The position numbers and the translations under genes were made by a program. A stretch of 63,911 bases of DNA, the filler included, from Reticulomyxa filosa (lineage: Eukaryota; Protista; Foraminifera), in NCBI GenBank assembly GCA_000512085.1. It is 20 parts of 20 records of this genome, joined end to end, with 100 filler letters (N's around TTAATTAATTAA, not from the genome) between each part and the next. Parts side by side here need not be neighbours in the genome. Positions count along the whole stretch, not along the records: positions 13,340 to 21,009 come from ASPP01019337.1; 19 more parts are not named here. One strand, written 5' to 3'. Positions 1 through 21,009 of this stretch are shown piece after piece (the stretch's first letter is position 1; each line of letters opens with the position of its first letter). The notes beneath the pieces are model-generated. The model was not told the DNA's origin, did no database searches, and saw nothing but the letters and a program-made list of their open reading frames with translations.

Positions 1-447
1 ATGACGATAAAATCAAATGTGATGATATAAATGAGTAGAGGTTTTTACAAATTAATTTTCAAATATAACACTTTTTGTTATAAGAAATCTTTTAATGAAA
101 AGACTTTTTTTGTGGTAATGCATGACTATTTTTCTTTCCTACAAAGTTTGAATTTTATTTGAATTTTTTTCATCATATGATTAGTGTTTGTGATAATCGT
201 TTTTACATTTAAATCACTCATACTGAAGATCCTCTTATCAAATGAGTTTTTCTTTCTACCACTGCATTCCATATTCGAATAGTTCCATCTAATAAAAATA
301 ATACAATTTTGAAAAAATTTTACACGAAATGATTCGTATACGCAACCTTTGAATAATTTATTGTAGTGTAAAATACCCTTTCTGCTTTTTGTTTAAAGAG
401 TCACGCCACATCATTCCGTTTTTTAAAAAAAACTACACATTAACAAC

Positions 448-1623
448 ATGGGTAATCGAACTACAACACAAAAACCTCCTGAAAGACAAACCGAGCAAAC
501 TGAACAAAGTCAACATCTTAATACCATCTTTCAAACTTTGAAGGAGTTGCCCACTTCATTTCGTCAGTCTCAATGTGTGGTACACAGACACGAAATCCTC
601 ATTTGTGGAGGTAGATATCAAAGAGCTTGTTATTCTTATCATACACTCAAAAATGAATACATGTTTATTTGTGAATATCCAAGTGATATCATATTGGATG
701 GATACTGTGTAGTGAAACTGGAAGATAACAACAACAATAACAGAAATGAAATCACTTTATTGTCTTTTGGTGGTGTATATAACCACACATCAGTAATGAA
801 ATATGTAAGCGTTTGGGATAATATATCAAAAAAATTAAATAAATTCAACAATTACAATAAATGGACTCCTTTTACAGACAATCAAAATAATCCAATTATC
901 ATTGGGAAAAATAATAGTTATTATTGGGGAGTGCGTGCAGTGATTGGTGGAAGCAACAATCATTTGTTATTTATCACTTGTCGGAAAAATAATATTAGTG
1001 TGTTTGATTTAAATACATTTCAATTTATTAAATATGACATTTTACCAACTGATTATTATATTGAATATCATTGCTTTGTATTAAAATCAAAAAATGGACA
1101 AGGACAAGAAATGATGAAAATAAATCAACAAAATTATCAAATGCTGTTGTTTTATAAAAATACAGGATTATCAATTGAATATAATGAAAATGACAACACT
1201 TTTCAATTTCATAAACTAACTGTTTGTGATGATTTTAAATCACTTATTGCATATGCATATGTGTGTATCAATGATGACATCTTGTTCTTTGGTGGATCTA
1301 ATGATAAGAATGTTGTTTCAAAATCAGTATACAAGTATTCAATTCGAGAAAAGAAATGGATGATATTTGAAAATACTTTGCCTAGTCCATTGAAAGATTG
1401 TACTGCAATATTGAATAAAGAAGACGATCATATATACATCATTGGAGGATTGGATGATAAAAATAAAACTATATCAGTCCACATGAGGACAAAAGTATGT
1501 GTATGGGATGTTTCACAGTTGGTAATTATTATTCATTATTGGATTCGAACTTTAAAGATAAAATTAGGATGGATTGATGATTTTGATAAAATTGTTGTCA
1601 TGTACAGTATAAATGAGATTTAA
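448..1623 (+). CDS. Kelch-like beta-propeller protein of a lineage-expanded family, with C-terminal WIRTLKIKLGWIDDFDKI module
   Basis: 391-aa ORF with repeated Kelch-type GG motifs (ILICGG, LLSFGG, AVIGG, ILFFGG, IYIIGG) and Y..W spacing; close paralog at 13340-14357. Confidence 0.85.
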   Translation: MGNRTTTQKPPERQTEQTEQSQHLNTIFQTLKELPTSFRQSQCVVHRHEILICGGRYQRACYSYHTLKNEYMFICEYPSDIILDGYCVVKLEDNNNNNRNEITLLSFGGVYNHTSVMKYVSVWDNISKKLNKFNNYNKWTPFTDNQNNPIIIGKNNSYYWGVRAVIGGSNNHLLFITCRKNNISVFDLNTFQFIKYDILPTDYYIEYHCFVLKSKNGQGQEMMKINQQNYQMLLFYKNTGLSIEYNENDNTFQFHKLTVCDDFKSLIAYAYVCINDDILFFGGSNDKNVVSKSVYKYSIREKKWMIFENTLPSPLKDCTAILNKEDDHIYIIGGLDDKNKTISVHMRTKVCVWDVSQLVIIIHYWIRTLKIKLGWIDDFDKIVVMYSINEI

Positions 1624-2802
1624 TGTAGATGTATATAGATAAATTTTTAAATATCTATAATCATGTCATCTTTAAATATGGATTTAATTTTTGTAAATTT
1701 TTAAAAATTTGACAGTTATGTTTGTCTTACAATTATAAAATTTGCCAACTTTTTTTAAGTATTTCCAAAAAATATTCATTTAATACTTTTAGTCTAAATA
1801 AGAGGATTTAACAAAATTGCTTGTGAAACAACGTGGTGGAATATTTTATTTTCAATTTAAGTGAATTTATTCACAAATATAAAAAAATATTTACTGAGAG
1901 AAGAGGTATCATCTCTAGTTTGAAAAGTAAAAATATAAATGGGAGAAAAAATTTTGATTTTTATGAATGTAATTTAGTTCAATTTGTTAAATAAATTTAC
2001 GTATACTAAAGAAGTTAAAAAAAAACAGGTCGAACACTGCATATCTGGTTTAAAATAGCAGAATCCACAGAAACAGGCAATGTTGTCGCTTTTTTAGCTG
2101 CAATGCTGACAATGTGGATCTTGCAATATTCTCTTACCAAATTAAAAAACAACTTTTCTATGTAGATCATGACGCTTTCCATTTGTTACTCTACATGATG
2201 ATTGGCAAACAATGATTTCTTGCATCAGTGTTGTTTTTAATGATATGAAACGCCTGTGTCCAATGTTTTGACTCATAGTTTGAATCGTACTATTTTACCT
2301 TTACATAAAATAGCAATCAGCAAAAGAAAGTAAAAAATTTTTGATAAACAGTCACAAAGCAACAATATGGCAATCCGTTTAATTGAGCAAATATTGTAAA
2401 CTCTGATTGGAATCATAATAGAAAAGAGATCACACATTACAGCCAAAAACCTCTTTACAAAGTTATCACATTATATGTCACACCAAATTTCCTTAAAAAT
2501 GCTTGTCATATTTGTAGAAATGTTTTTGCATTGAAAGTCCACAAAATGAAATTAAGTACTAAAGTTCAAAAATCTCGACAAAAATGAGACATTTCAATAG
2601 ATAAATATTGATTTAAAAATATTTTTGTTAATGTGCTTATTTCTGAGATGTATCAACATATTCAAAATAAAAGAATTGAATGTGTTGTGTTAAATGAATT
2701 TTGTACTTTATTATGTCAAAAATGAATTGTCTTGCTTAACATATATTCAAAATATTATCCATACCTAAAGGCACTATATGAAGAGAATCGATTTTCTCCA
2801 TG

Positions 2803-2902
2803 NNNNNNNNNNNNNNNNNNNNNNNNNNNNNNNNNNNNNNNNNNNNTTAATTAATTAANNNNNNNNNNNNNNNNNNNNNNNNNNNNNNNNNNNNNNNNNN
2901 NN
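2803..2902. other. Artificial contig-joining spacer (N44-TTAATTAATTAA-N44), first of 19
   Basis: Identical 100-bp spacers start at 2803, 4097, 11554, 13240, 21010, 22849, 25988, 28375, 31904, 33593, 40475, 44866, 46409, 48198, 50114, 51605, 56824, 61378 and 62564; TTAATTAATTAA gives stops in all six frames. Confidence 0.98.
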
Positions 2903-3088
2903 ATTCGATTTTGGGATATTCGATCAAATAAGAATGAATTGTATGTTATGAAAGTAAATGAAAAAGGAGATGATGAAGTGTGCTGTATTAGATTCGTGTC
3001 ATTAAAAAATAATAGAAGTAATATAAATAATTATGGACTTCATTTATGTTATGGTTCATGGAAAGGGCAAGTTCATGTTTGGGGATGA
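2903..3088 (+). CDS. C-terminal fragment of a WD40-repeat protein (5' end cut by contig edge)
   Basis: Reads IRFWDIRSNKNELYVMK...LHLCYGSWKGQVHVWG*; the IRFWDIRSNKN tail is nearly identical to the WD40 copy at ~13090-13239. Confidence 0.8.
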   Translation: MRFWDIRSNKNELYVMKVNEKGDDEVCCIRFVSLKNNRSNINNYGLHLCYGSWKGQVHVWG

Positions 3089-3296
3089 ATATAATTATTA
3101 AATTTTTTTGTCTTTTTTTTTTCAAAACAGTTTTTTGTCAAATAATTTTTTTTATAATTTTATTTTACTTTTTCCAAAGACATAAAATATCAAAAAATCG
3201 AATAATCAAATTTAAAAAAAAAAGTCAAAACAGACTTATTCTTGCTTTGATCTTTTTATGTATTTTCAATATATCACTTCAATATAATTTGACTAA

Positions 3297-3341
3297 TAAG
3301 ATATCGTTTTAGACAATCAGTTTTTTGTGCAACATACTGTA
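3297..3341. repeat. Diverged copy of a Tc1/mariner-like terminal inverted repeat end
   Basis: TAAGATATCGTTTTAGACAATCAGTTTTTTGTGCAACATACTG-TA resembles the copies at 22949-22992 and 53792-53836. Confidence 0.6.
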
Positions 3342-4199
3342 TTTTGAATATCAATTGTTTGTAAATTACTTTATGGATTTAAATCATCTTATTATTTTTT
3401 TCATTTTATCAAAGATTGACATAGTGAATTTGTTATGAAACGTCATTTTGACAATAGTACTTTTAATGCATTAAGACCACAAAGAAAGGGTTAAAAAATA
3501 AATGAAACACAATTTGTAGATATTTTTCTTATATGAAAAAAATAATTTTCACAAAGAATCACAATTATCTCTATAGGTAAAGTTTTAGGTATCAACTTTC
3601 TTTTTTATTCTACTGTGAAAAAAGAAAAGAGTTTTGTTTGGTGTTGATTGAAATAAGGAAAAAGATTATTATTGTTTAAGTCAAAAAATGCATTGACAGA
3701 CAGTGCGGGATATTTTGTCGGTCATGTAAGTGCCACTAATGTTTTGCAAGATACACAAACATCTCAAACTGATCAACGATGCATTTTACATTTTCATCCT
3801 TCCATGAGACAGGCCGAAGGGATATTTAGTTGTAATGTGTCATGGGTACTCCCCTTTAGACATTTCCATATTATATTCTCAAGACCTTACACTAATGTCA
3901 CGAACGCATGTAAAATGGTCCCCTGATGGTATTCTAGAATCGAGAGCGAAGATAACAATACCTAGGTTATATTATTAACATCGATGGTCTATGGTAGAGT
4001 GATTCGACCGGCTATGAGAATTTGTAAATTGTGGAATTATTCCATTGATATCAATTTTATTGGTTTACTGCTGAGAGTAATCGGTAATATTGGTATNNNN
4101 NNNNNNNNNNNNNNNNNNNNNNNNNNNNNNNNNNNNNNNNTTAATTAATTAANNNNNNNNNNNNNNNNNNNNNNNNNNNNNNNNNNNNNNNNNNNNTTT

Positions 4200-4241: not shown

Positions 4242-6069
4242 TGTCATTAATGTGCATTCGACCGCATTAGTGGTGTTAGTGTTATCATTTTTCTTCACAA
4301 TCATGGACACGTGCCATTTCTGTTTTGTAAACATTGTATTTGTATTACCTTTTATTTTTCTGTTCCCACCCCTTTTTTTTTTTTTTTTTTTTGGATAGAA
4401 AATATATGTTGCCAATATTTTCTTTTCTTATTTTATATTATCCACTTCAATCAATAGTATGTCATACCAAAAAAAAAAAAAAAAAAAAAAAAGTGTTGAC
4501 GCGGCCATTGCAAGCATTGCTATGGGAAGTGACGATAGGGAATACGCAATCATATGTAGAGACGTTGCGGACGTGGACAGTGGTGCAAGGCTTGTCGCGT
4601 ATGTTAGGATATGCGGTGGTGGGCATATGGTTGGAATGGGACATCTTTGGTGACCGACTGAGCAATATAATTTGGATCTTTACCATTGGGAGCGTGATCG
4701 TGTTACTATCGGCTTGCATTTGCTTGTCATTGTCACCCAATCCAAGTGAAATCGCGTATTACTATGAAGACATCCCCACTTTGGAAACGCTCACGCACAC
4801 ACACGAGGCGTCGAAGAAATACGCCACAGGGATCACATTTCTCAAAAGCATCGATGATGACCCCGACCAGTACTCGGACGCCGAAATCAAAAACTTGCTT
4901 CTGAAAAAAGACGCCGTTGGCTCGCATCTGACACAGACACCAGAAGACGAAGAGCTTGTCGATGTCGCTCCTCCTTCCCACACCAATGAAAGCGAATACC
5001 AAGAAATCGGTCTCGATGACATCACACCTGTTCGAGAACACTCACAAGCCGAGGCTGAAGAAGAGTTTAGGAGTTATCTAAGCAAATTCTTTTTCAAATT
5101 TTATTATCAAACTTAATTTTTTTTTTTTTTAATTGCTAATATATGTACGTTTATATAATATATTAATTTATATATGTGTATGTGCATATACATATACATA
5201 TACTTATATAATCAACAGAGAACCACAAGATGAGTTTTATAAAGATTATATGAATAGCAGCAGCTTGACAGCAGTGTATTTGTTGTGGGCGAGCCACATC
5301 TTTGGATGGATTACTATGTGCAGCGTGGTGCTGTTTTGGACTTCGTTTTGTGCCATTGATGTGTACAATGGCGGCCCTAAGGCCGATACTAATTCCGACT
5401 CGTTTCACGACTTTGAGTCGGGTCTCACCTTTGGCGTCTTTGGCCTGCTGCTCATGGCCTTGGTACAAATCAACGCAAGCTTGTTATTCGATTCCCTTCA
5501 TTCCATTTCCAATACACGCAGCTTGTTTCTTGTAGGTCAGTTTTGTCTGCATTTCATTGGATAATATGCATATTATTCACATACACATATTCATATTACA
5601 TATAAATAAATATATATGTACATATATAATATTTGTATTTATATTTATATTTATATGTAACACGTGCACAGGAGAAATTGGAATGGGTTTGATTTGCGTA
5701 TCATTATGGGTAACGACAAGCAAAGTTGCATTATTAATCCTCATTGCAGTCTTTGGATTTTTTATTGAATTGCACTTACAAACATCTCAACGTTTAAGTC
5801 AAAATGAATTCCAACCATTGGTTATTGAATATAATAAGAGCTCTAATAAAAAAGTAATGCTCAACTATCTGATGGAATTGGAAAGTGCCCTTGGCCCTTT
5901 GTTTGTTAGTGCTTTTGGAGGACCTACTGTTTATTTTTGTCATAAGGATTTCAGTTATGCTTTCCTCGTCCCCGGCATTTTCATGCTCGTTTTGAATTTT
6001 ATCGTTCTTTGCATTTTTTGTGATTGCCTACCATGGAAGCTGCCCCCTTCGCGACAATCATATTACTGA
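4242..6069 (+). CDS. SLC45 / sucrose-H+ symporter-like MFS transporter, multi-exon, 5' partial
   Basis: Spliced reading DTCHFLLTRPLQALLWEV, WTVVQGLSRMLGY, HIFGWITMCSVVLFWTSFCAIDVYNGGP...FESGLTFGVFGLLL matches the SUT/SLC45 pattern; many TM segments and an acidic central loop; GT-AG introns near 4322-4493, ~5080-5218 and ~5536-5671. Confidence 0.75.
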
Positions 6070-6488
6070 TTTTGCAACATTCTCATTTCCAATTAAAAAT
6101 AGAATATATTATCATTTTGTTGATGTGTGTTGCAATGTTAGTGGAGTTACATAATTGTGAACAAGTAAAAGAAGGGAGGGAAGAGGTTAAGATACTTTTC
6201 TTGAGAAATTCATTTGCCAAAACAGAAAAACAATATTGGAAAAAATTTTGCTGTAGAACTAACAGGGAAGAGGTGTGTCCAGTTTATAAAAAAAAAAAAA
6301 TCAATTTTTTTCCCTTTTCGCACTTTTGTTTATTCCTCATGAATCTGTATTATTAAATTCTTTTCAACCATGTAACGAAAAAAAATACAAAACAAAATTG
6401 CAAAGGAAAAAAAAATGTGTGATTTGTGCAGATACAATATTTTTGTAAACACTACACAAATTGTCCAGTTTGATTGATTCTTAAAAAA

Positions 6489-9982: not shown

Positions 9983-11490
9983 TCAACGGCGACTATATCT
10001 TGCCCGTCTATTCCATGACTGGTTGCTGTCACTGCATACTTGGCTCCAATTTCGTTTTCTCGAATCTTTTGTTGCATCGACTTTTTTAGAATCTTTGAAA
10101 TGAACAACGCCAGGCTTTTCAGCTCTATAATGCATAAGGACGGGGCGCCTCGGCATGTCTTTGTCAGTGCCATCGAACATTTCGTGATAGCCGCAATAAG
10201 CAGAGATTCGCATGGAGTACTCCAAAAGTACTTGAATTTCGTTATACGTCAGCTCATCAAATCCACAAAAAACAAAGTACTGATTCCAGCCGCGACTGCC
10301 ATCGTGCAATATGTAATCGCACGTTTGTCTGAGTTGCTGCTTGAGTTGCAAAGTCGGTCTTCCCAATCTGCGATGGAAGGAATTGAGTTGTCTCAAAAAA
10401 TTGTCCTTACTTTCGCCAGCGATGCCACCGACCGCAACGTCTTCGCATGGTTCATTGACGTGAGTCATGAACCACACTTGAAACATGATCAGTCGACGAC
10501 TGACAGTGGTTGCATCCAGGGACCTTTCCAATCGATCAACGATCCTTGAGCAAGTGTTCAATTGATTGAATCTCTTAGTGATCCATAAGGCATTCCTCGA
10601 GAGTGACTCCAAAATTAACTCTCGTCCCACATCGTTCCAAGTGAAATCACTTATCAAAATATAGATAAGAAACACGCCTAAATCCGAAACATGTCCTTTG
10701 AGACGACAATTTGGATCTTTAATGAATGCACCAACTTTTTTATTTGCCAATTGCTTCATGCCAGGATTTCGATATACCAACCACAATAACAGATGATACA
10801 AGCTCACATAGCCAAGCAAAGCTTTTTCACAAAGTTGCAACGAGATTGAATTCGTCGTCGCTATATTCGAATTACTACTACCTTCAGTTTGCTCAAACAC
10901 AAATTCCACTACCATTGAATTCATTATAGTGGCAATGCATTCGATCATTGACTCTTCTTTTTTCCACTTTCCTTCGTTTACGGAATTCAACCACAATTTC
11001 TTCAAATATGTTTCGATTATATCACTAATCCTGGCTCCATGTTCTTTGTTTATCACCAATGGCAGAAAGTGGGTCAATGTCTCCCCCCACACCCCCGTTC
11101 GCACGCCGTCGTTCATCCACGCATTCAAAGACATAAAGTCCATTTGACTTTTGAATTGCATCCGTCCATTCTTCTTGTCTTCGATGCGTTCGAAACCAAC
11201 GCCTAAAATAACATCTGGATGGGACAGCCTTTGCTTTGTGAAAAAGCAAGCAATTTCATTTCTTTCGAATATGTTGTAATCGAGTATTATGCTGTGCCAT
11301 CGACGGCATACTTGGAACATCTTATGCATCTCTGGCACTTCCAAGAGCTCAAATATCATTACGTATATCTCGTCAATTATTTTCTTATCTTTATCAAATG
11401 CATCTTTGCTTTTTTCGTCCTTTTTCTCGTCTTTTTCTTTGTTTTTGTTGTTTTCGGACTGTTCTTGTGTCTTGGATTCCTGATTTGGTT
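9983..11490 (-). CDS. F-box-like protein with the conserved C-terminal domain seen in fungal/protist UBC-fusion proteins (5' end unclear at contig edge)
   Basis: IIDEIYVMIFELLEVPEMHKMFQVCRRWHSII fits the F-box consensus; downstream motifs CFFTK..LGVG, FLPLVI, EKALLGY..YHLLL, DLGVFL, ESLSRNALW, SRRLIMFQ, GYH. Confidence 0.65.
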
Positions 11491-12235: not shown

Positions 12236-13239
12236 TCAACCAAATTACTCAGTACATTCATTGGACATACTGATCGGATATCTAGTATTGATTACTCAAC
12301 ACTTGATTGTTTTCATTTCTTTGTTGATCATATGATAAAACAGTTCGTGTATGGGACATTGAAAACAATAAACAAGTTCAATCATTCAATCGACATTCAA
12401 ATAAAGTATTTTGTGTGAAATTTTCATTATACTATTATCATAATAATGATCAAAATGTCATTTGCTCTTCATCATTTGACAGTATCATTCGTTTTGGGAT
12501 TTCAAAAATAATAAAGAATTACAAGTATTAAAAGAACATAAAGAATGTGTTTCTAGTCTTGCATTTTCACTATTTAACGGTGGTCGATATTTATGCTATG
12601 GATCATATGACCATACTACTCGTTTATGGGATATCAAGGAATCAAGGACATTAGTGTTTTCAATGCGCATAAAGATGGTGTTACATGTATTGATATTTCA
12701 CCATTGCAAAATAATAGCAAAAATAATAATATTGGTGTAATTGGTGGCAATGGATATACACTTTGTTCTGTATCATTTAATCAAACTATTTGCACATATG
12801 ATATTGAAACGAACAAATTATTAAATACATTCAAAAAGCATACAAAATATATACTTAATGTAAAATATAGACCAAATGAATTAGTGAATATTGGTTGTGC
12901 AGATACAATATTATCCCGATCATATGATTGCAGTGTTATTTTGTAGGATATTCGATCAGGTCAACAAATTCAAGTTTTTAGATTACATAAGTCTCCGGTG
13001 TATGCTGTTGAATATTCACCATTTGTAATACCTAATAATATTGGTGGTAATTCAAATGTGATATGTTCTGGATCATGTGACAATACAATTCAGTTTTGGG
13101 ATATTCGATCAAATAAGAATCAATTGTATATAATCAAAGGACGATAGCAAGATAATGGAATATCTTGTCTTACATTTGCATCATTGAAAAAGAATAGAGT
13201 AAAAGATGATCATAATGTTCATTTATGTTATGCTTCAAA
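12236..13239 (+). pseudogene. WD40-repeat pseudogene
   Basis: FIGHTDRISSIDYS, SYDHTTRLWDI, IGVIGGNGYTLCS, ICSGSCDNTIQFWDIRSNKN; several frameshifts and in-frame stops (e.g. TAG at ~12944). Confidence 0.85.
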
Positions 13240-13339
13240 NNNNNNNNNNNNNNNNNNNNNNNNNNNNNNNNNNNNNNNNNNNNTTAATTAATTAANNNNN
13301 NNNNNNNNNNNNNNNNNNNNNNNNNNNNNNNNNNNNNNN

Positions 13340-14357
13340 TGATGTTGAATTATGTGGACACTGTGTAGTGAAACTGATAGATAACAACAATAAAAACAAT
13401 CAAATCACTTTATTATCTTTTGGTGGACAACATAAACATACACTAATAATGAAATATGTAAGTGTTTGGAATGATATATTAAACAACTACAATGAATGGA
13501 TTCCTTTCACAGACAATCACAATCATCCAATTATCATTGGAAGAGATGAACATCAATATTATGAAGGAGTGCGTGCAGTGATTGGTGGAAGAAACAATAA
13601 TTTGTTATTTATTACTTATTATTTACAGAATATAAGTATATTTGATTTAAATACATTTCGGTTTATTAAACATGATACTTTACCTACTAATGATTCAATA
13701 TGGTTTCATTGCTTTGTATCAAATTCAGAAAATGGACAAGGACAACAAATGATGAAAATAAACCAAGAAATAAATAAACAAAATTATCAAATGTTGTTGT
13801 TTTGTAACAACACAGGACTATCAATTGAATATGATGAAGATAACAACACTTTTCAATTTCATCAACTACCTGTTTGTGACGATATTGCACCATTCAATTG
13901 TTATGCATATGTGTGTATCAATGATGTCATCTTATTCTTTGGTGGATGTAGTTGGGATGAAATTTATTTCGTTGTTGTTTCAAAATCAGCGCATAAGTAT
14001 TCAATTCGAGAAAACAAATGGATAACATTTCAAAACGCTTTACCCAATCCATTGCATTATTGTGTTGCAATATTGAGTGAAGAAAACAATCATATACACA
14101 TCATTGGAGGGTCATATGAAACTCACAGGAAGACAAAGGTGCGTATATGGGATCCTTTACTATTGGTTATGATTTATTTATTTATTACTTTAATAAAACG
14201 CAAATGAATTGTACTGTATGAAACTGATTAACAAATAATAAATATTAAACAGTCAAAAAATGAAATAAAATATATAATTGAACATTGGATTCAAACTTTG
14301 AAGATAAAGTTAGGATGGATCGATGATTTTAATAAAATTATTTTTAAATACAGATAA
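13340..14357 (+). CDS. Kelch-like beta-propeller protein (5' partial) with terminal exon carrying the WIQTLKIKLGWIDDFNKII module
   Basis: Paralog of 448-1623; intron 14166-14252 (GT...AG); last exon SKNEIKYIIEHWIQTLKIKLGWIDDFNKIIFKYR*. Confidence 0.85.
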
Positions 14358-15909
14358 TTGATTTTTTTGGCGAAGAAGCAACTAAAAAATTTTTTTTTCA
14401 ATATTGCCTTAATTATGGCTTTTACTTTTCTATATTGCTTTGTTGCTATAAACACGTTTTTATTATTTGTTCAAGCAAACACGACTATCAGGTTTCTACA
14501 CATTTGTTAATAATAAAGTAAAAAATTCAGTCAGTACCTTAGATACTATCAGTACAAAAGGATATCTACATTATTGTATCAACAGAGGGTTCGATGTTTG
14601 CAAGTTTCTCTATGCTACTGTCACGGGAGCGTTGCTTACATAGTTCAGTCAATATATTTATTACAAGCTGCATTTTTTTGCAATAAAAAATTACAATGAA
14701 ACTGCTTGCAATTGTTCAATCTAATTAAGACAAACAACTTAAACAAAGTTATTTACGATCATTAAATTAAATAATACTTTATATCAATGTTTGTTCTAGA
14801 ACCTTTTGTATTTCAATTGGATGCAATTTTGGATAGTTATACATCGAGACTCTTTTTGAATGTTATTCATAACAGTGTTGTTGTGTGTTGTTCAATAACT
14901 ATCAGTTGATTATAAACAAATGCGCCTCTTTAAATAGAACAATCAAAAACAATGATTCAAACAACTTTTCTTTTTCTGCTATTTTCAACAAAATTGTAAA
15001 AATGAAAAACTTTAAAATTGCACACTTTTTACTGCTTAGACGTAGTCATTAAAAGCTCTTTGTTTTTGACCTTTTTTTCGTTGTTTCTACTATTAATGAG
15101 GACTCTTTTCTTAGAAGAGGAAGGAGCACATGAAGCAGAGAAGATGGTAATTGAATCTTCAGATAAAGGATTGATAAGTTTTAAGTCCAGAAATAGTTCA
15201 GTGTGAGAATTTTCTAACTCTCGCAAATGTGATCATTATTTAGGTGTTTCACAAAGAATATCCAGCAGGCTAATTTTTATATTTCATGATGTGATTTTCT
15301 CAAGGAGATCAATCACAAACAATTTTTTGAACAGTGGTTATTTAGTATTGGCATTTTGATTATTGTCTTGTTGTTCACACAACATATACTTGGACTTAAT
15401 TTTCATAAAATTCAGTATCATGTGTATTTTTTTATCACTCAGAAATTTTAATCTTTCAAAGAAAAAATTAAAGCGTTATAGCAAATTTGCAATTCTCAAA
15501 AAAAAGACAAAAGTAGATTTTAAAAAAGCAGAAAAAACATAAAGAAAATTTTAAAAAGGATATCAGTTATAAAGAATGGTGAACGAACGTATGCGATCAA
15601 GCGAGCTCACCATCATCCTAGTTTTGATGAGACTAAGCACTAATTAAGAGTATCTCATGCCGTGAGAAAGTAGCGACGAAGCATAGTGATATTAAACAAT
15701 TCGATCGGTGATTGCAGAGAAGAAATACACAAAATAATATAATCAACTCGTTCGTTAGTCCGCTGATAACTTCGTTTCTTTTTGGAAGAGTCTTTTGTGC
15801 AAGAATGCTTAATGAAAGCCTCAGAGCTTCAATAGACCATTTTTGACAGCAAACAGTTAACAAATCTTTGTTGTTTGTTCTCGAAACACATACATTACAA
15901 AGGGCAAAA

Positions 15910-16103
15910 TAAAAAAAATTGAACTACATCCCCCCATCGAACACTTTTGAAAATTTTTTTAAAAAAAAGCAGTTATTTTTAAAAAATTGGTTCAAAAAAT
16001 ATGAAATGACCCACAATTTGGAAAAAATGACACAAATCTGAAAAATTCAAGAATGTTTCGTACTAATTAATGCCATTCATTTTTCATTTTTTAGAAAAAA
16101 AAG
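15910..16103. repeat. Dispersed repeat A, probable transposon terminus
   Basis: GAACTA(C/A)ATCCCCCCATCGAACACTTTTG...AATTGGTTCAAAAA..ATGACCCAC...CTGAAAAATTCAAGAA is shared with 48670-48848 on another contig. Confidence 0.8.
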
Positions 16104-16940
16104 TTGGTGTGCCATTTGACCGGTACTGATTAAACTGATTCAAATCCAATTCTTTTCTACATTTATTGGTTGAATTACTTTGCTGTTTGCCTTTCAAACT
16201 TTTTCTATACTTTGAAAAGATTCAATGAATGGCAATATTTCAAAGATTTAAATAAAACATTAAAGCTGCTATGTAATTGCATAAATTATATGCCTCATCA
16301 ATTAATTTGAAATAGCTTAATGATTAAGTTTTTTGTTATTTTTAAAATAGAAACTACAAATTATTTGTACTCAAAGAGTCAATTTTAATCCTAGTTTTTA
16401 AAATTGGAGTAGATCCACTTACAAACAATTTTTAAATTGGACATTAATTCATCCTTCTATTTTTGATTTGAAAAACTTGGAAAAAAAAAAGGGTTGATTA
16501 AATCAACATATAATAAAAGGAACTTGGTTGCATTAAGTAATAGTCCATTGATTATTTTATTCAGAACAATACTGATTTTCCAAAGAGTTCAACACTCAAA
16601 TACGTATCAAAAATAAACAGATGAGATATAAAAAAAACAAGGAATATTTGGATAACATATCTCATTCCTTTTTCAGAATCTACAGTAAATTGAAAATTCT
16701 CTTCAAAAAAATCTTTATGCGAAGATAATGTGATGTTTCCGAAAATAACAAAATGAAGATCTTCTTTTGAATCTAACAGTTTTTTGGAAAAATTGAAAAT
16801 GTTCAAATCTATTAAATTGTGCAAATTAATCTTTGCACAATTCATTTAAGAGATTTGATAATCTATTTGTTTGTAAAAATGAAATTATGTCATATTTATC
16901 ATTTTATCTGAATGAAATTAATATATAACACGTCACACCC

Positions 16941-17456
16941 AAAAACAGTCATGTAGAATTTTCTTTTAGGAAAAAAAAGCATAGTTGGTGGATGCATTCT
17001 TTGGAAAGATTTTAAGAAAGTTCTATGTATTAAATCTATAAATAAAACTTTGCAATATACCTTAAATGCTTGTTGTAAATACAAATAAATCAAAAATTAG
17101 TTTCTTTCACACGTTTTTACTGACAAAGAAACACAGCAAAACATTTTCTTTACTGAATTATATTTTAAAGGAAAAAATTCCTAAGATGCTGGTGATTATG
17201 AAAGTATAATAGAAAATTATCTATTTTATTTTCTTTTATTGTTCACCAAATTGCGACAAAATCCTTACTAGTTTTTCTTGAATGTATTTATGGACTAATT
17301 GCATATTTGCAAAAAAAGGAATTTTGAAGAGAACTCTTTGCCATAAAAAAATTAAAAATTAATGGAAAAACATTGGGCAAAGAATGGCTCTAAATTCAAT
17401 GATTCGGTCCTGAAATGACTTGTAAACCATTGATAGGGATTGTTTGGAATGAGTTT
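16941..17456. repeat. Dispersed repeat B
   Basis: Collinear similarity with indels to 31430-31868 on another contig (AAAACAGTCATGTAGAA..., TTATTGTTCACCAA.TTGCGACAAAATC, TTTTGAAGAGAACTCTTTG). Confidence 0.85.
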
Positions 17457-17976
17457 ACCCATTCCTATAATTTTGAGTAAACTAGAAATTAAACAAAAAA
17501 ATTCTTGTTGACTCCAAGAAAAGTTTTTTTAAAGAGAAATAAAACCTCCTTTGCTAGTAAAGAAGCAAAAATAATAAGAAATTAGAATTAGTTCAGTCCT
17601 TCATTTTCTTTCATCAATTATATTCATATTCTCTTTGTATAGTTTAGAGGTTTGTTAATTGTTTGCAATGATAAAAAAAAGAACTCTTTCCTATAGAAAA
17701 AAAAATGTATTCATGTGTATGTATAAATAATGGATGTTAATACTACAAAATAAAACACTTATTTCTCATACAAAGTTTATATTTATTAAATAAAAGAATT
17801 TTTTATTGACCCTTAGTGGGCTTTAAAAAAAAAGTTGAAAAGCATTATTTTCATTATCTTTGCATCATCAAAGATCATCTCAAGATACTTTAGATTAGTA
17901 ATGAAAGTTTCGTTTAAGTTGTTTTTTACGTTTTTCTTCTTCTTATTTTTCTCATTTTACTTTATGATTAAAACAG

Positions 17977-18388
17977 TCAAAAGAAGAAGAGATCCAAATC
18001 ATTATTCATCATTGGATTCGAACATTAAACATTAAACTAGGATGGATCAAAGATTTTGACAAATTTGTCGTCAATTATGTTAGTCCATTTATTTTTCTTT
18101 TTTAAAATACTAATAAAAATATTCAAATGTTTATTTAACATAGATATCTACTGTCTTCATGTTTGAAACATTTCGTTCATCATCCAAATTAATCAATACA
18201 TTTACTGGACATACAGATGTTGTGTGGAGCATTGATTATTCAACATTTGATAATTGTCAATTCATTTGTTCTGGGTCAGGTGATAAAACAGTTTGTGTAT
18301 GGGATGTTGATAACAACAAACAAATTCAATTGTTCAATGGACATTCAGATTATGTGAGATGTGTGAAATTTTCATTATATCATTATCA
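17977..18388 (+). pseudogene. WD40 gene interrupted by a retrotransposon
   Basis: Exon 17977-18078 SKEEEIQIIIHHWIRTLNIKLGWIKDFDKFVVNY, intron, exon from 18144 ...FTGHTDVVWSIDYS...SGSGDKTVCVWD...GHSDYVRCVKFSLYHYH, then an abrupt switch to unrelated GC-richer sequence. Confidence 0.85.
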
Positions 18389-21009
18389 CCTGTTCTCTCG
18401 AATTGATGCCACCAACGATTTCAAGCAAAGAATTTCCAATGGTCACACCTCTCATTCCTAATCGCATTGCAAAAACGAATATTGATCCAGATGTTATTCA
18501 TTCAGACAGTAAGGGGATACTGCCACCCCAATTGGGGATGCAAAAAGGCAAAGCGGTTAAGACGCATGCATTAATAACGGACGCTGTGCTAACCAACAAA
18601 AAGGAGCAATACGTCAAGGTTGTCAAGAATTTAATATTGACGAGAGCGGGAACCACCACGAGGTGAGGCAATTATTACCCTTTCGACAAAATTTTTGACT
18701 CACCTACAGTGATTAAGGAGGTTATTCCGGCAATTGTAGACTCAATCATTGGACGTGCACTCGATGGAAATTCAGATTTCTTCTGTTTGTATGGACAGCC
18801 ATCTCCAGTAGACTCCACTCAATCGTCAAATATCATCACTGCTGCATTGAAATATATCGTGGACAGTTTGAAGGGGGAATCCCAAGCAACGAACATTTCA
18901 ATAAAATTATCGGCCATGGAATATTACGGCACGAATATATCCAAGATCCGTGTATATGACTTGTTGGATAGTGTCAACGTTCGGGCAGCCTCCAATCACC
19001 AGAAGAAGGGATATTCGACAATCAACTTTTCGAAACAATACAAAAGAATTATTGATAATGGTATCGACATCGAGAACGCACTGACGGATATCAGAAAGGC
19101 ACCCCATATTCATTTGCAAGGTCAAGGTCAAGACCTTGGACAGTTACTCCCACCTGGGCACATAATTCTTAATATTGTAATTCGTCAAACATATATTAAA
19201 AATGGTATTGGTGTGGTGCAAGTAAAAAGCAATATTTTTGTTTTCGTTCTAGCGTATGAGACTTCATACAATGTAGTAAATTTTTGTACTCATTTTAAGA
19301 ATTTGTCGCATGATCATAATGAAATTCTTCATACTTTAGAGTCTTCATGTAATGCATTGATGACAAAACAATTTTGTGACATCCTTAAAAATTATAACAA
19401 GCTCAAAGTCAATTACTGTGATCAACATGGGTGTAGTGAATGGATAAAAGCTATATTATCGTGTTTGGTGAGATCTTCTAAGTTTTGGTATTTTTCCTGA
19501 TTAATCCTTCGGTAACGGTAGCAGCATCGACGGACGACCTCTTGCAATTCGCAGCGGATATATCACACGTAGTAATCCCTCGGAGAGAGCCCAATATAGT
19601 GTCATGTGAATTGCCATCGGAAGAGTCACCAATGAATTCATCCAACGTAATGATTACCAACACAGATTGCAAAGATTGTAGTGGGATGCCTCATGGTGCA
19701 CCTCCATCATCACAAGCGCAACAAGCAAGCCACACCATCGCAAGTGCGGAGCAGCGGTCAGCGGATGCCTGCCAGCAAAGCCGACATTCGTCGGAGACGT
19801 CATCGTCACGTGAGCTGTTGCTACAGCAAGAACTTCCCAACGACATCAACATACCCGATATCAATAAAAATATTAGTAATGATACAACTAGCAATACGAA
19901 CCAGCGGCTAGAGGAGGTTTCCGGGGACAAAGACCCTGATGAGCACCAGAAATATGATGATGATACCTTTCCCTTGAACAGCAATTTCGTCCCAGAGAGG
20001 AACAACGTTGAGGCAGAGCCACCCGACGACATCACCAACCAACATCATTTATTCCAACATTCCTTTGATCAGGATGAGCTTTTCACAGATGTTGCAATGC
20101 CACCTCCAAGTCCACCCCCACAATAGATAACATGCATATGAAGTGTCGCGATGAGTGGATCAATCAACAAAACGCACAACACGACAGCATATCCAGGCAG
20201 CAGCAGGCGGAACAAAAATATTCGGAAGATATGGGAACATGGCAATTCCCAATTATAGAAGTAATCATCAATAAGCCTACTAAAATTATTGCTCGCGTCC
20301 CTAAAGCCGCGTGTAGCGTATTTGCTTCTATTGTGGCATGGACACTACGGGATATATCGGATAATAATAATACCGCTTCATGGACTAAGTGGCTATTATT
20401 AAGTAGGCTTATTTTATGGGACCCAGTGAGATGTGGGATCAAACATGCTAACGCCACAACAAAAACCATCATCAACAGAATTAAGATGTGGAAAGAAGAT
20501 AATATCAATAAATAATGGGAAGACTTTTGTGAATATTCTGCGGCATTAACAAAACTGCCCGTCGTAAAAAGAGCGGAGTCATCTTCTGCAGCAAGGCTAA
20601 ACGCAACACATTCAAAGGCCATCAAGCTCTATGCTTTAGGTTAGTTGTCAAAAGCATTCAAGGCGTTAACCCCAAGCCAGACCGTATGCTACGATAACAA
20701 CACAATCAATCAATTACAAGAAAAGCATCCATTCGAGACACCACCTACTGCGACACTGCAATCAATTCAAAGAGATGAGACACCCGTAGACTAGACCATG
20801 ATGACCTAACAATAGCATCACTATCTTCCGCATCAATAATATTGGCATTAACATCTTTAGAAGCGCTAAAGGACACTCATGGAATTCAAATCAATTATGC
20901 AAAGACAGAATGGATTTCCAATTTATCAAGAGCGCTTCCAAGCCAATTCATTGGTATTACACACAATACAACATTTGATACATCATTAGTTAGTATCCCC
21001 ATCGGACGA
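18389..21009 (+). mobile_element. Degenerate CRE-like non-LTR retrotransposon with an N-terminal kinesin motor-like domain; internally deleted and cut by the contig end
   Basis: 20132-20790 has CRE-type pre-RT motifs (ARVPKA, SWTKWLLLSRLILWDP, NRIKMWKE, KAIKLYALG*LSKAFKAL, INQLQEKHP); 20794-21009 has RT motifs DHDDLTI, GIQINYAKTEW, LVSIPIG; 18403-19570 is kinesin-like; no introns evident. Confidence 0.8.
18403..19570 (+). pseudogene. Kinesin motor-like domain with degenerate P-loop and switch motifs, inside the retroelement
   Basis: Collinear with the kinesin consensus: YPFDKIFD, RALDGNSDFFCLYGQ, NIITAALKYI, IKLSAMEYY, VYDLL, GHIILNIVIRQ, SNIFVFVLAYE, VFFLINPS, DLLQFAADIS; one in-frame TGA at 18664 and a frameshift near 19480. 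Confidence 0.75.

Follow-up and report, generated by a model that had tools for sequence, protein, structure and literature searches.

Long interspersed nuclear elements (LINEs) acquire proteases, RNase H, esterases and similar domains, and some of them are known for their targets, R2 inserting in rDNA and CRE/SLACS in spliced-leader genes. Within the group of LINEs that encode a restriction-like endonuclease (RLE), which comprises the CRE, R2, R4, NeSL and HERO clades, NeSL/Utopia elements carry an N-terminal Ulp1-like protease, and an RNase H lies upstream of the reverse transcriptase (RT) in the Utopia elements of oomycetes (PMC4640811). The layout described for this group (PMC4640811) matches the general architecture of a retrotransposon family that we describe here from the foraminiferan Reticulomyxa filosa, in which several members carry a kinesin domain ahead of the RT. 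The family was approached through a 63,911-nt stretch of DNA, hereafter the window, made of parts of 20 records of assembly GCA_000512085.1; the positions analysed, 13340-21009, are the part taken from ASPP01019337.1, and coordinates are those of the window unless another locus is named. A previous reading of this DNA (the sequence-only reading) had proposed that the segment 18389-21009 is a CRE-like element that captured a pseudo-kinesin. We conclude, with high confidence as to identity and architecture, that it is a dead, 5'-truncated and internally deleted copy of an R. filosa retrotransposon without long terminal repeats (non-LTR, LINE-type), lying in a WD40 exon. Full-text literature searches, which did not cover the genome paper, found no account of a retrotransposon with a kinesin domain, and none of elements of this kind in R. 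filosa, in keeping with the statement in that reading that no kinesin-carrying element was known.

A decayed element copy in a WD40 exon

The boundary of the segment coincides with a change in base composition. A composition scan gave a GC content of 0.22-0.32 up to ~18390 and of 0.40-0.49 from there to the contig end, and the WD40-repeat exon of the host at 18159-18388 (Pfam WD40, E = 3.4e-12; GC 0.27-0.32, as compared with >=0.40 downstream) ends in the middle of its second repeat, precisely at the composition change at 18388. Both the exon halting mid-repeat and the rise in GC behind it had been noted from the sequence alone, and both were recovered here, the GC rising from ~0.25 to 0.40-0.49. 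The exon is the insertion target of the element copy, whose truncated 5' start falls within a junction zone at 18389-18435, delimited by the GC shift and by the onset of homology to a full-length related locus, L005, at ~18436. This exon, the junction zone and all features of the copy described below lie on the + strand.

The segment reads, in order, as a kinesin-like domain, a linker, a pre-RT region and the tail of an RT. The kinesin-derived (pseudo-kinesin) motor domain spans 18436-19577 (18403-19570 in the sequence-only reading) and is identified by Pfam, by a PDB profile, by structure prediction and by tblastn, as detailed below. Positions 18388-18663 and 18667-19497 share one frame, separated by a single in-frame stop at 18664-18666, and the last 30 residues are read in another frame (19482-19577), following a frameshift at ~19485-19500 that falls in the final strand and helix of the motor (alignment A3). 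The Ser/Gln/Asp/Pro-rich linker (19578-20123) is homologous to the linkers of loci L001, L005 and L006, and ends at a junction (20123-20126) where ~211 bp are deleted, L001 positions 1488 to 1702 corresponding to window positions 20123 to 20126. This deletion, which was placed from BLAST segments and protein motifs and was misplaced by a global MAFFT alignment of the window with L007, took the C2H2 finger together with the front half of the CCHC knuckle, motifs that are present in P0003, L005 and L007. The tail of the knuckle and the conserved pre-RT domain follow at 20126-20791, with 67% amino-acid identity to residues 104-324 of protein P0002 and with in-frame stops at 20513-20515, 20642-20644 and 20792-20794, the third of which closes the segment. 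A second deletion of ~724 bp, located within 20780-20815 (residues 325-500 of P0002 and nt 1117-1856 of L007 are without a window counterpart), took RT motifs 0-4, that is, the fingers and most of the palm. RT motifs 5-7 remain at 20797-21009, with 82% identity to P0002 residues 501-571 and a match to positions 154-204 of the Pfam RVT_1 profile (E = 0.031); they include HDD (20797-20805), GIQINYAKTEW (20881-20913) and IPIG (20995-21006). The contig edge at 21009 then cuts the element ahead of the remaining RT and of the endonuclease and 3' end.

The linker, the pre-RT region and the RT motifs predicted from the sequence alone (xHDD, GIQIN..KT and IPIG) were thus all found, and the linker, pre-RT and RT tail match RT-bearing relatives at 67-82% amino-acid identity. 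The description of the damage to the copy as a few stops and frameshifts and nothing else does not hold, as the two internal deletions of ~211 bp and ~724 bp come in addition. For all searches the pieces of the window copy were used separately, neither joined nor repaired, and the pre-RT stretch was read through its stops as X for the hidden Markov model search and for the tree.

A kinesin domain within the mobile unit

The domain ahead of the linker belongs to the kinesin superfamily by several measures. The window stretch itself matches Pfam Kinesin at E = 7.3e-5 (22 bits, under the 29.3 cut-off), and the only close protein among 5.8 billion, R. filosa RFI_20893 (P0001; 46% identity to the kinesin-like stretch), is over the Pfam Kinesin gathering threshold, along profile positions 43-324 (E = 9.9e-8). 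A two-sequence profile made of the window piece and P0001 retrieved 76 PDB chains, all of them kinesin motors (best E = 2.3e-7). An AlphaFold2 model of 18667-19497, built with seven family sequences and of moderate confidence (predicted local distance difference test, pLDDT, 61.6; predicted template-modelling score, pTM, 0.65), gave kinesin motor domains as all of the top 50 Foldseek matches in the PDB (E = 1.5e-10; TM ~0.55). In addition, tblastn joins the window stretch to bona fide kinesin domains at locus L002 (E = 4e-5) and in protein P0009 (E = 2e-6). A search of the Atlas with the kinesin domain of L003 returned generic kinesin clusters only, and singled out no kinesin family or host donor. 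The kinesin assignment made from the sequence alone is therefore upheld by profile (76/76 chains) and by predicted structure.

The order from kinesin to RT is collinear on six further contigs, of which five are from R. filosa and the sixth, of 16 kb, is from ENA, and the element carries the kinesin domain at seven loci in three diverged subfamilies; the kinesin part shares 20-57% amino-acid identity between subfamilies. L001 (ASPP01018238, the contig of P0001) is collinear with window positions 18655-20721, at a nucleotide identity of 66% in the kinesin part and 73.5% downstream. A 209-codon frame is open across its pre-RT region, and an exhaustive phmmer search with this frame found 218 relatives, many of them RT-bearing, the best being R. 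filosa proteins. Both the kinesin and the downstream parts of the window are matched by L005 and L006, and its kinesin-like and pre-RT parts by P0003 and P0004 (45-57% identity). Proteins that join a recognizable motor to the downstream domains include P0007, named 'kinesin family member 4, partial' in GenBank (Kinesin E = 2.6e-24, a pre-RT domain and RVT_1 E = 2e-12), and P0009 (Kinesin E = 9e-25 and a pre-RT domain). The 16-kb ENA contig, L003 (ERZ25039484 contig_74177), holds three copies, one of them with a Pfam Kinesin match at E = 2e-41 and the motifs GQTGSGKT, SSRGH and DCAGSS.

Several copies keep long frames across these domains. In L002 (ASPP01002760.1) an uninterrupted ORF of 1199 codons runs from the N-terminus through the kinesin motor (Pfam E = 2.6e-24), the linker, the C2H2 and CCHC fingers and the pre-RT domain into RT motifs 1-3, which answers in the affirmative the question of whether a single ORF joins the two parts. 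L006 has an uninterrupted ORF of 704 codons from kinesin-like to pre-RT, in an element that extends to the endonuclease; L005 has 1379 open codons from kinesin-like to RT, L007 has 879 open codons, and P0009 has 638 codons spanning kinesin to the pre-RT domain. The GC content of the kinesin part is at the level of the element rather than that of the host, and the 5' truncation points that fall inside the kinesin differ between copies, lying at the start of the motor in the window, at about residue 128 of P0004 in L006, and at Pfam position 124 in P0009. Such variable 5' truncation is the product expected of target-primed reverse transcription. Because the kinesin shares an uninterrupted ORF with the RT in four copies, has the GC of the element and is variably truncated, it is part of the mobile unit and not a target flank. 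The proposal of a kinesin fold carried by the element is accordingly supported, the domain being integral to the single ORF at seven loci.

The opposite arrangement, in which the element inserts site-specifically into or after host kinesin genes and the kinesin is host flank, has some grounds, since RLE-type LINEs are often target-specific (PMC4640811) and the occurrence of the same sequence after poly(A) at three places in L003 hints at an insertion preference. We regard it as very improbable: kinesin, linker, fingers and RT share an uninterrupted ORF in L002, L005, L006 and P0009, the kinesin part has the element's GC and is cut at varying points, and ~1 kb of shared sequence lies 5' of the kinesin ORF in the L003 copies. 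Moreover, no other fetched locus matches the flanks of the copies in the window and L006, and the window copy adjoins a WD40 exon. The check suggested earlier, whether kinesin and RT occur together at many loci with different flanks, thus finds them together at several loci, with unrelated flanks for these two copies. The same contigs bear on whether the adjacency of kinesin and RT could be a chimeric assembly or chance nesting. The assembly is highly fragmented (contigs of 2-8 kb) and the junctions are known from assembly alone, but at least six more independent contigs, which represent three subfamilies, repeat the order and have homologous linkers, one of these contigs coming from the separate ENA assembly, and such an artefact is hardly credible.

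Two further observations concern the structure of the copies. In L005, the sole fetched copy that extends so far 5', a 1103-codon Ser/Thr/Pro/Gln-rich ORF without a Pfam match (333-3644) terminates at the opening of the kinesin-RT frame, overlapping it by ~118 nt in another frame; such an ORF could be an ORF1 or, if a frameshift has split the protein, a long extension of its N-terminus. L001 and L006 differ little in the kinesin part (dS 0.43) and are saturated in the pre-RT part (proportion of synonymous differences, pS, 0.82), where L001 is 96% identical to L007, a pattern that suggests mosaic copies, formed by recombination or template switching between subfamilies.

The protein order pieced together from the more intact members is a variable low-complexity N-terminus, the kinesin motor, an acidic Ser/Pro-rich linker, C2H2 and CCHC fingers, the pre-RT domain, the RT, and a C-terminal CCHC motif with a PD-(D/E)XK RLE. 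The RT matches Pfam RVT_1 at E = 3.8e-20 in P0005, and a nine-sequence RT profile has its best PDB matches in R2 (E = 3e-23) and LINE-1 ORF2p (E = 1e-20); phmmer with the whole of P0005 gave no match in the PDB. C2H2 and CCHC motifs were found in L002, L004, L005, L006, L007 and P0009. In the best-preserved relative, L004 (R. filosa RFI_31151), an ORF of 1568 codons contains both kinds of finger, the pre-RT domain and a set of RT motifs that has YHDD among them, and in its C-terminal domain RHD, E, RPGD, DV and K come after a CCHC motif. The invariant positions of alignment A5 (C48, H58, C62, R71, H72, E93, R103, P104, D106, D122 and K153) correspond to CCHC, RH, E, RPxD, D and K. An AlphaFold2 model of the C-terminal domain (pLDDT 74.7, pTM 0.78) has R2 proteins as its top seven Foldseek matches (E = 7e-5 to 3e-3); next come Prp8 and the cap-snatching endonucleases of viruses, with PD-(D/E)XK folds. 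No apurinic-type endonuclease (APE) match (Exo_endo_phos) appeared in Pfam scans of the family proteins.

The family also has the features by which LINEs are recognized, namely no LTRs, a 3' untranslated region (3'UTR) with poly(A), and 5'-truncated copies, the extent of truncation differing between the window, L006 and P0009. A 3'UTR of ~300 nt with poly(A) closes L002 and two of the three copies on L003. Because it combines a LINE-type RT, an R2-like endonuclease, no APE domain and a 3'UTR with poly(A), the family is an RLE-encoding non-LTR retrotransposon, assigned to the RLE group as a whole and not down to a clade, CRE included; no trypanosomatid element was among the named relatives. The RLE and N-terminal zinc fingers expected for the element by the sequence-only reading were accordingly found, in the relatives. 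Few insertion junctions were seen: the window copy lies in the WD40 exon, and in the L003 copies the poly(A) is followed by shared sequence. At L003 positions 5764-6129, 10624-10835 and 12653-13279 the same ~200-350 nt follow the poly(A) run, and this sequence also occurs 5' of full-length copies; it could reflect head-to-tail arrays or insertion into a repeated target.

Motor motifs, selection and a possible role

Canonical kinesins carry the P-loop GQTxxGKT, the switch I motif SSRSH and the switch II motif DLAGSE, and the three subfamilies differ in what they retain of these. The L003 copies have the P-loop AYGQTGSGKTYTL, SSRGH at switch I, and VDCAGSS or VDCAGSE at switch II, while L002 has the P-loop GHSDSGKT and SSRGH with a broken switch II. 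In the window, L001, L005 and L006 the P-loop is lost, switch I reads PPGH or IHGH, and switch II reads LAYET or LVCES. The remnants in the window itself, located by alignment A3, are LYGQPSPVDST for the P-loop (18787-18819), LLPPGHIIL for switch I (19144-19170; SSRGH in relatives) and FVFVLAYETS for switch II (19237-19266; VDCAGSE in relatives); ~11 P-loop residues, including GSGKT, are missing in both the window and L001. With its nucleotide-binding motifs gone, the domain of the window subfamily cannot be an ATP-driven motor, and the term pseudo-kinesin is apt for it. An invariant Gly-His of switch I is common to all three subfamilies, and L002 and the L003 copies share SSRGH (in place of canonical SSRSH) and a switch II that begins with D-C-A (in place of D-L-A). 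These shared switch motifs fit a single capture of the domain.

The kinesin part is under purifying selection, its degenerate form included. The ratio of nonsynonymous to synonymous substitution rates (dN/dS) of this part is 0.105 between L006 and L001 (234 codons, dS 0.43, Fisher p = 2e-19), and 0.23-0.26 among the L003 copies; this comparison across copies was one that the sequence-only reading had called for. Inserted copies decay neutrally, and the low dN/dS therefore places most of the divergence in lineages where the kinesin domain mattered. Because such selection coincides with the retention of canonical ATPase motifs in one subfamily, a working role is likely.

These data also bear on two other accounts of the domain. 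If it had been captured once, for example by a template switch onto a kinesin mRNA, and had since been a functionless passenger in decay, the destruction of all three nucleotide-binding motifs in the window subfamily and the existence of an intact relative, L004, with no kinesin domain would be readily explained. The degenerate kinesin part, however, has a dN/dS below that of the linker (0.24), L005 and L006 keep long open frames across it, its fold is still predicted to be that of a kinesin, and it persists in three deeply diverged subfamilies, so that we consider a mere passenger unlikely. Open frames and purifying selection would equally be expected if the kinesin-RT proteins were host genes, co-opted from the element and selected for the host's benefit, and one of them does bear the name 'kinesin family member 4, partial' in GenBank. 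Yet the copies are many and diverged, several with stops, frameshifts, deletions or 5' truncations; they have poly(A) tails, retain endonuclease motifs, and in one case lie inside a host exon. Domestication is, in our judgement, highly improbable.

Several points weigh against reading the segment as a copy of an element with a working kinesin. Taken alone, the window copy is sub-threshold in Pfam for RVT_1 (14 bits) as well as for Kinesin, and because its zinc fingers, RT core, endonuclease and 3' end are missing, its identity rests on homology to better copies. The junction at 18388 is known from the assembled contig alone. At the level of the family, no full-length, fully intact kinesin-bearing copy was among the loci recovered, whereas the intact 1568-codon ORF of L004 has no kinesin domain; the window's own subfamily is devoid of the P-loop and both switches; and in the pre-RT tree the kinesin-bearing and kinesin-less lineages (such as that of L004) form a polytomy, which fits a single gain followed by loss no better than other histories.

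By analogy with R2 and other LINEs, the element would move by target-primed reverse transcription as a cis-preferential ribonucleoprotein (RNP): its endonuclease would nick the target, the RT would start on the RNA at its 3' end, and where it stopped short a 5'-truncated copy such as that in the window would result. The kinesin domain would have been captured once from a host kinesin and kept as beneficial to the element, the most likely benefit being that it binds the element's protein and RNA to microtubules. An active motor is possible in the subfamily with canonical motifs, and the domain of the window subfamily could act only as an ATP-independent binder or scaffold. Attachment of the RNP to microtubules by the kinesin domain, as judged from sequence and predicted fold, is an idea we hold with somewhat less than even confidence. 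The fuller proposal, which is more tentative still, is of a foraminiferan RLE LINE with a working N-terminal kinesin, whose RNP would bind or walk along microtubules to nuclei, the window subfamily being a later, ATP-independent binder. The cell of R. filosa is metre-scale and multinucleate, and streams along microtubules; that an RNP may reach other nuclei in this streaming network is reasonable for the organism, and conjectural.

If this proposal is true, a transposable element that supplies its own cytoskeletal motor would have been found for the first time, and the captured motor would point to a new route by which a retroelement RNP gets to the nucleus, a problem that is acute in such a cell. 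The subfamilies form a natural series under selection, from a canonical motor, through a P-loop with a broken switch II, to a full pseudo-kinesin, with which the kinesin fold can be probed apart from its ATPase. The interest therefore lies at the level of the family, and the window copy is a decayed witness to it. A practical consequence concerns annotation: at least one transposon ORF, that of L002 (ETO34218.1), is deposited as 'kinesin family member 4, partial'. The kinesin expansion reported for R. filosa may be partly transposon-borne, and a recount is warranted.

Neighbouring genes, relatives and known systems

Upstream of the element, a 279-codon ORF at 13368-14207 matches Kelch repeats (Pfam Kelch_4, Kelch_1 and KLHDC2-type; E = 2e-6 to 1e-3) and is an ordinary host gene, with GC at the host level. 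A short coding motif, roughly KQSK..I.IIxHWIxTLxIKLGWIxDFxK, is present in two copies of ~74% nucleotide identity, one directly after the Kelch ORF (14247-14350) and one just 5' of the WD40 exon (17971-18077). It looks like a leader exon that repeat-protein genes of R. filosa have in common.

Among 39 long proteins that share the pre-RT domain, scanned with Pfam at a cut-off of E 0.001, RVT_1 was found in 20/39 and Kinesin only in two, R. filosa P0007 and P0009 from the ENA contig. In the pre-RT tree, the copies of R. filosa and of L003 fall in a single clade (support 94/94), within which the window groups with L001/L007, L006 and L005 (support 100/95). Apart from those of R. filosa, the closest of the named relatives are proteins of two dinoflagellates, Polarella and Symbiodinium. 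The module of zinc fingers and pre-RT domain (seen in P0039, P0066 and other phmmer matches) occurs in proteins of Polarella glacialis and Symbiodinium necroappetens and in many metagenomic proteins, and one long relative carries a PHD finger and no kinesin.

The proteins of L004, Polarella and Symbiodinium are relatives without a kinesin. They share the zinc fingers and the pre-RT domain with the kinesin-bearing family, and several also have the RT and the RLE; in contrast to that family they have no kinesin, and L004 has a low-complexity N-terminus. R2 and the other RLE clades (CRE, NeSL/Utopia, R4 and HERO) resemble the family in that a single ORF encodes zinc fingers at the N-terminus, then a LINE-type RT, and at the C-terminus a CCHC motif with a PD-(D/E)XK endonuclease; in the PDB, which holds solved structures only, R2 gives the best match to the RT in sequence and to the endonuclease in fold. 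The family differs from these clades in the ~340-residue kinesin motor domain added N-terminal of the fingers and in ending in poly(A), and its copy in the window has a protein-coding exon, not a known repeated target, as its site. NeSL/Utopia elements offer a precedent, being RLE-type LINEs with an extra enzymatic domain N-terminal to the RT in the same ORF (PMC4640811); the domain acquired in R. filosa, however, is a cytoskeletal motor and not a protease or nuclease. With the kinesin superfamily (kinesin-1, KIF4, Eg5 and others) the family shares the motor fold along nearly the whole Pfam profile and the N-terminal position of the motor, as in N-kinesins, and its L003 subfamily retains GQTGSGKT, SSRGH and DCAGS(E/S). 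Unlike those kinesins, the element has neither a coiled-coil stalk nor a cargo tail, its window subfamily has lost the P-loop and both switches, and the place of the tail is taken by a retrotransposon polyprotein.

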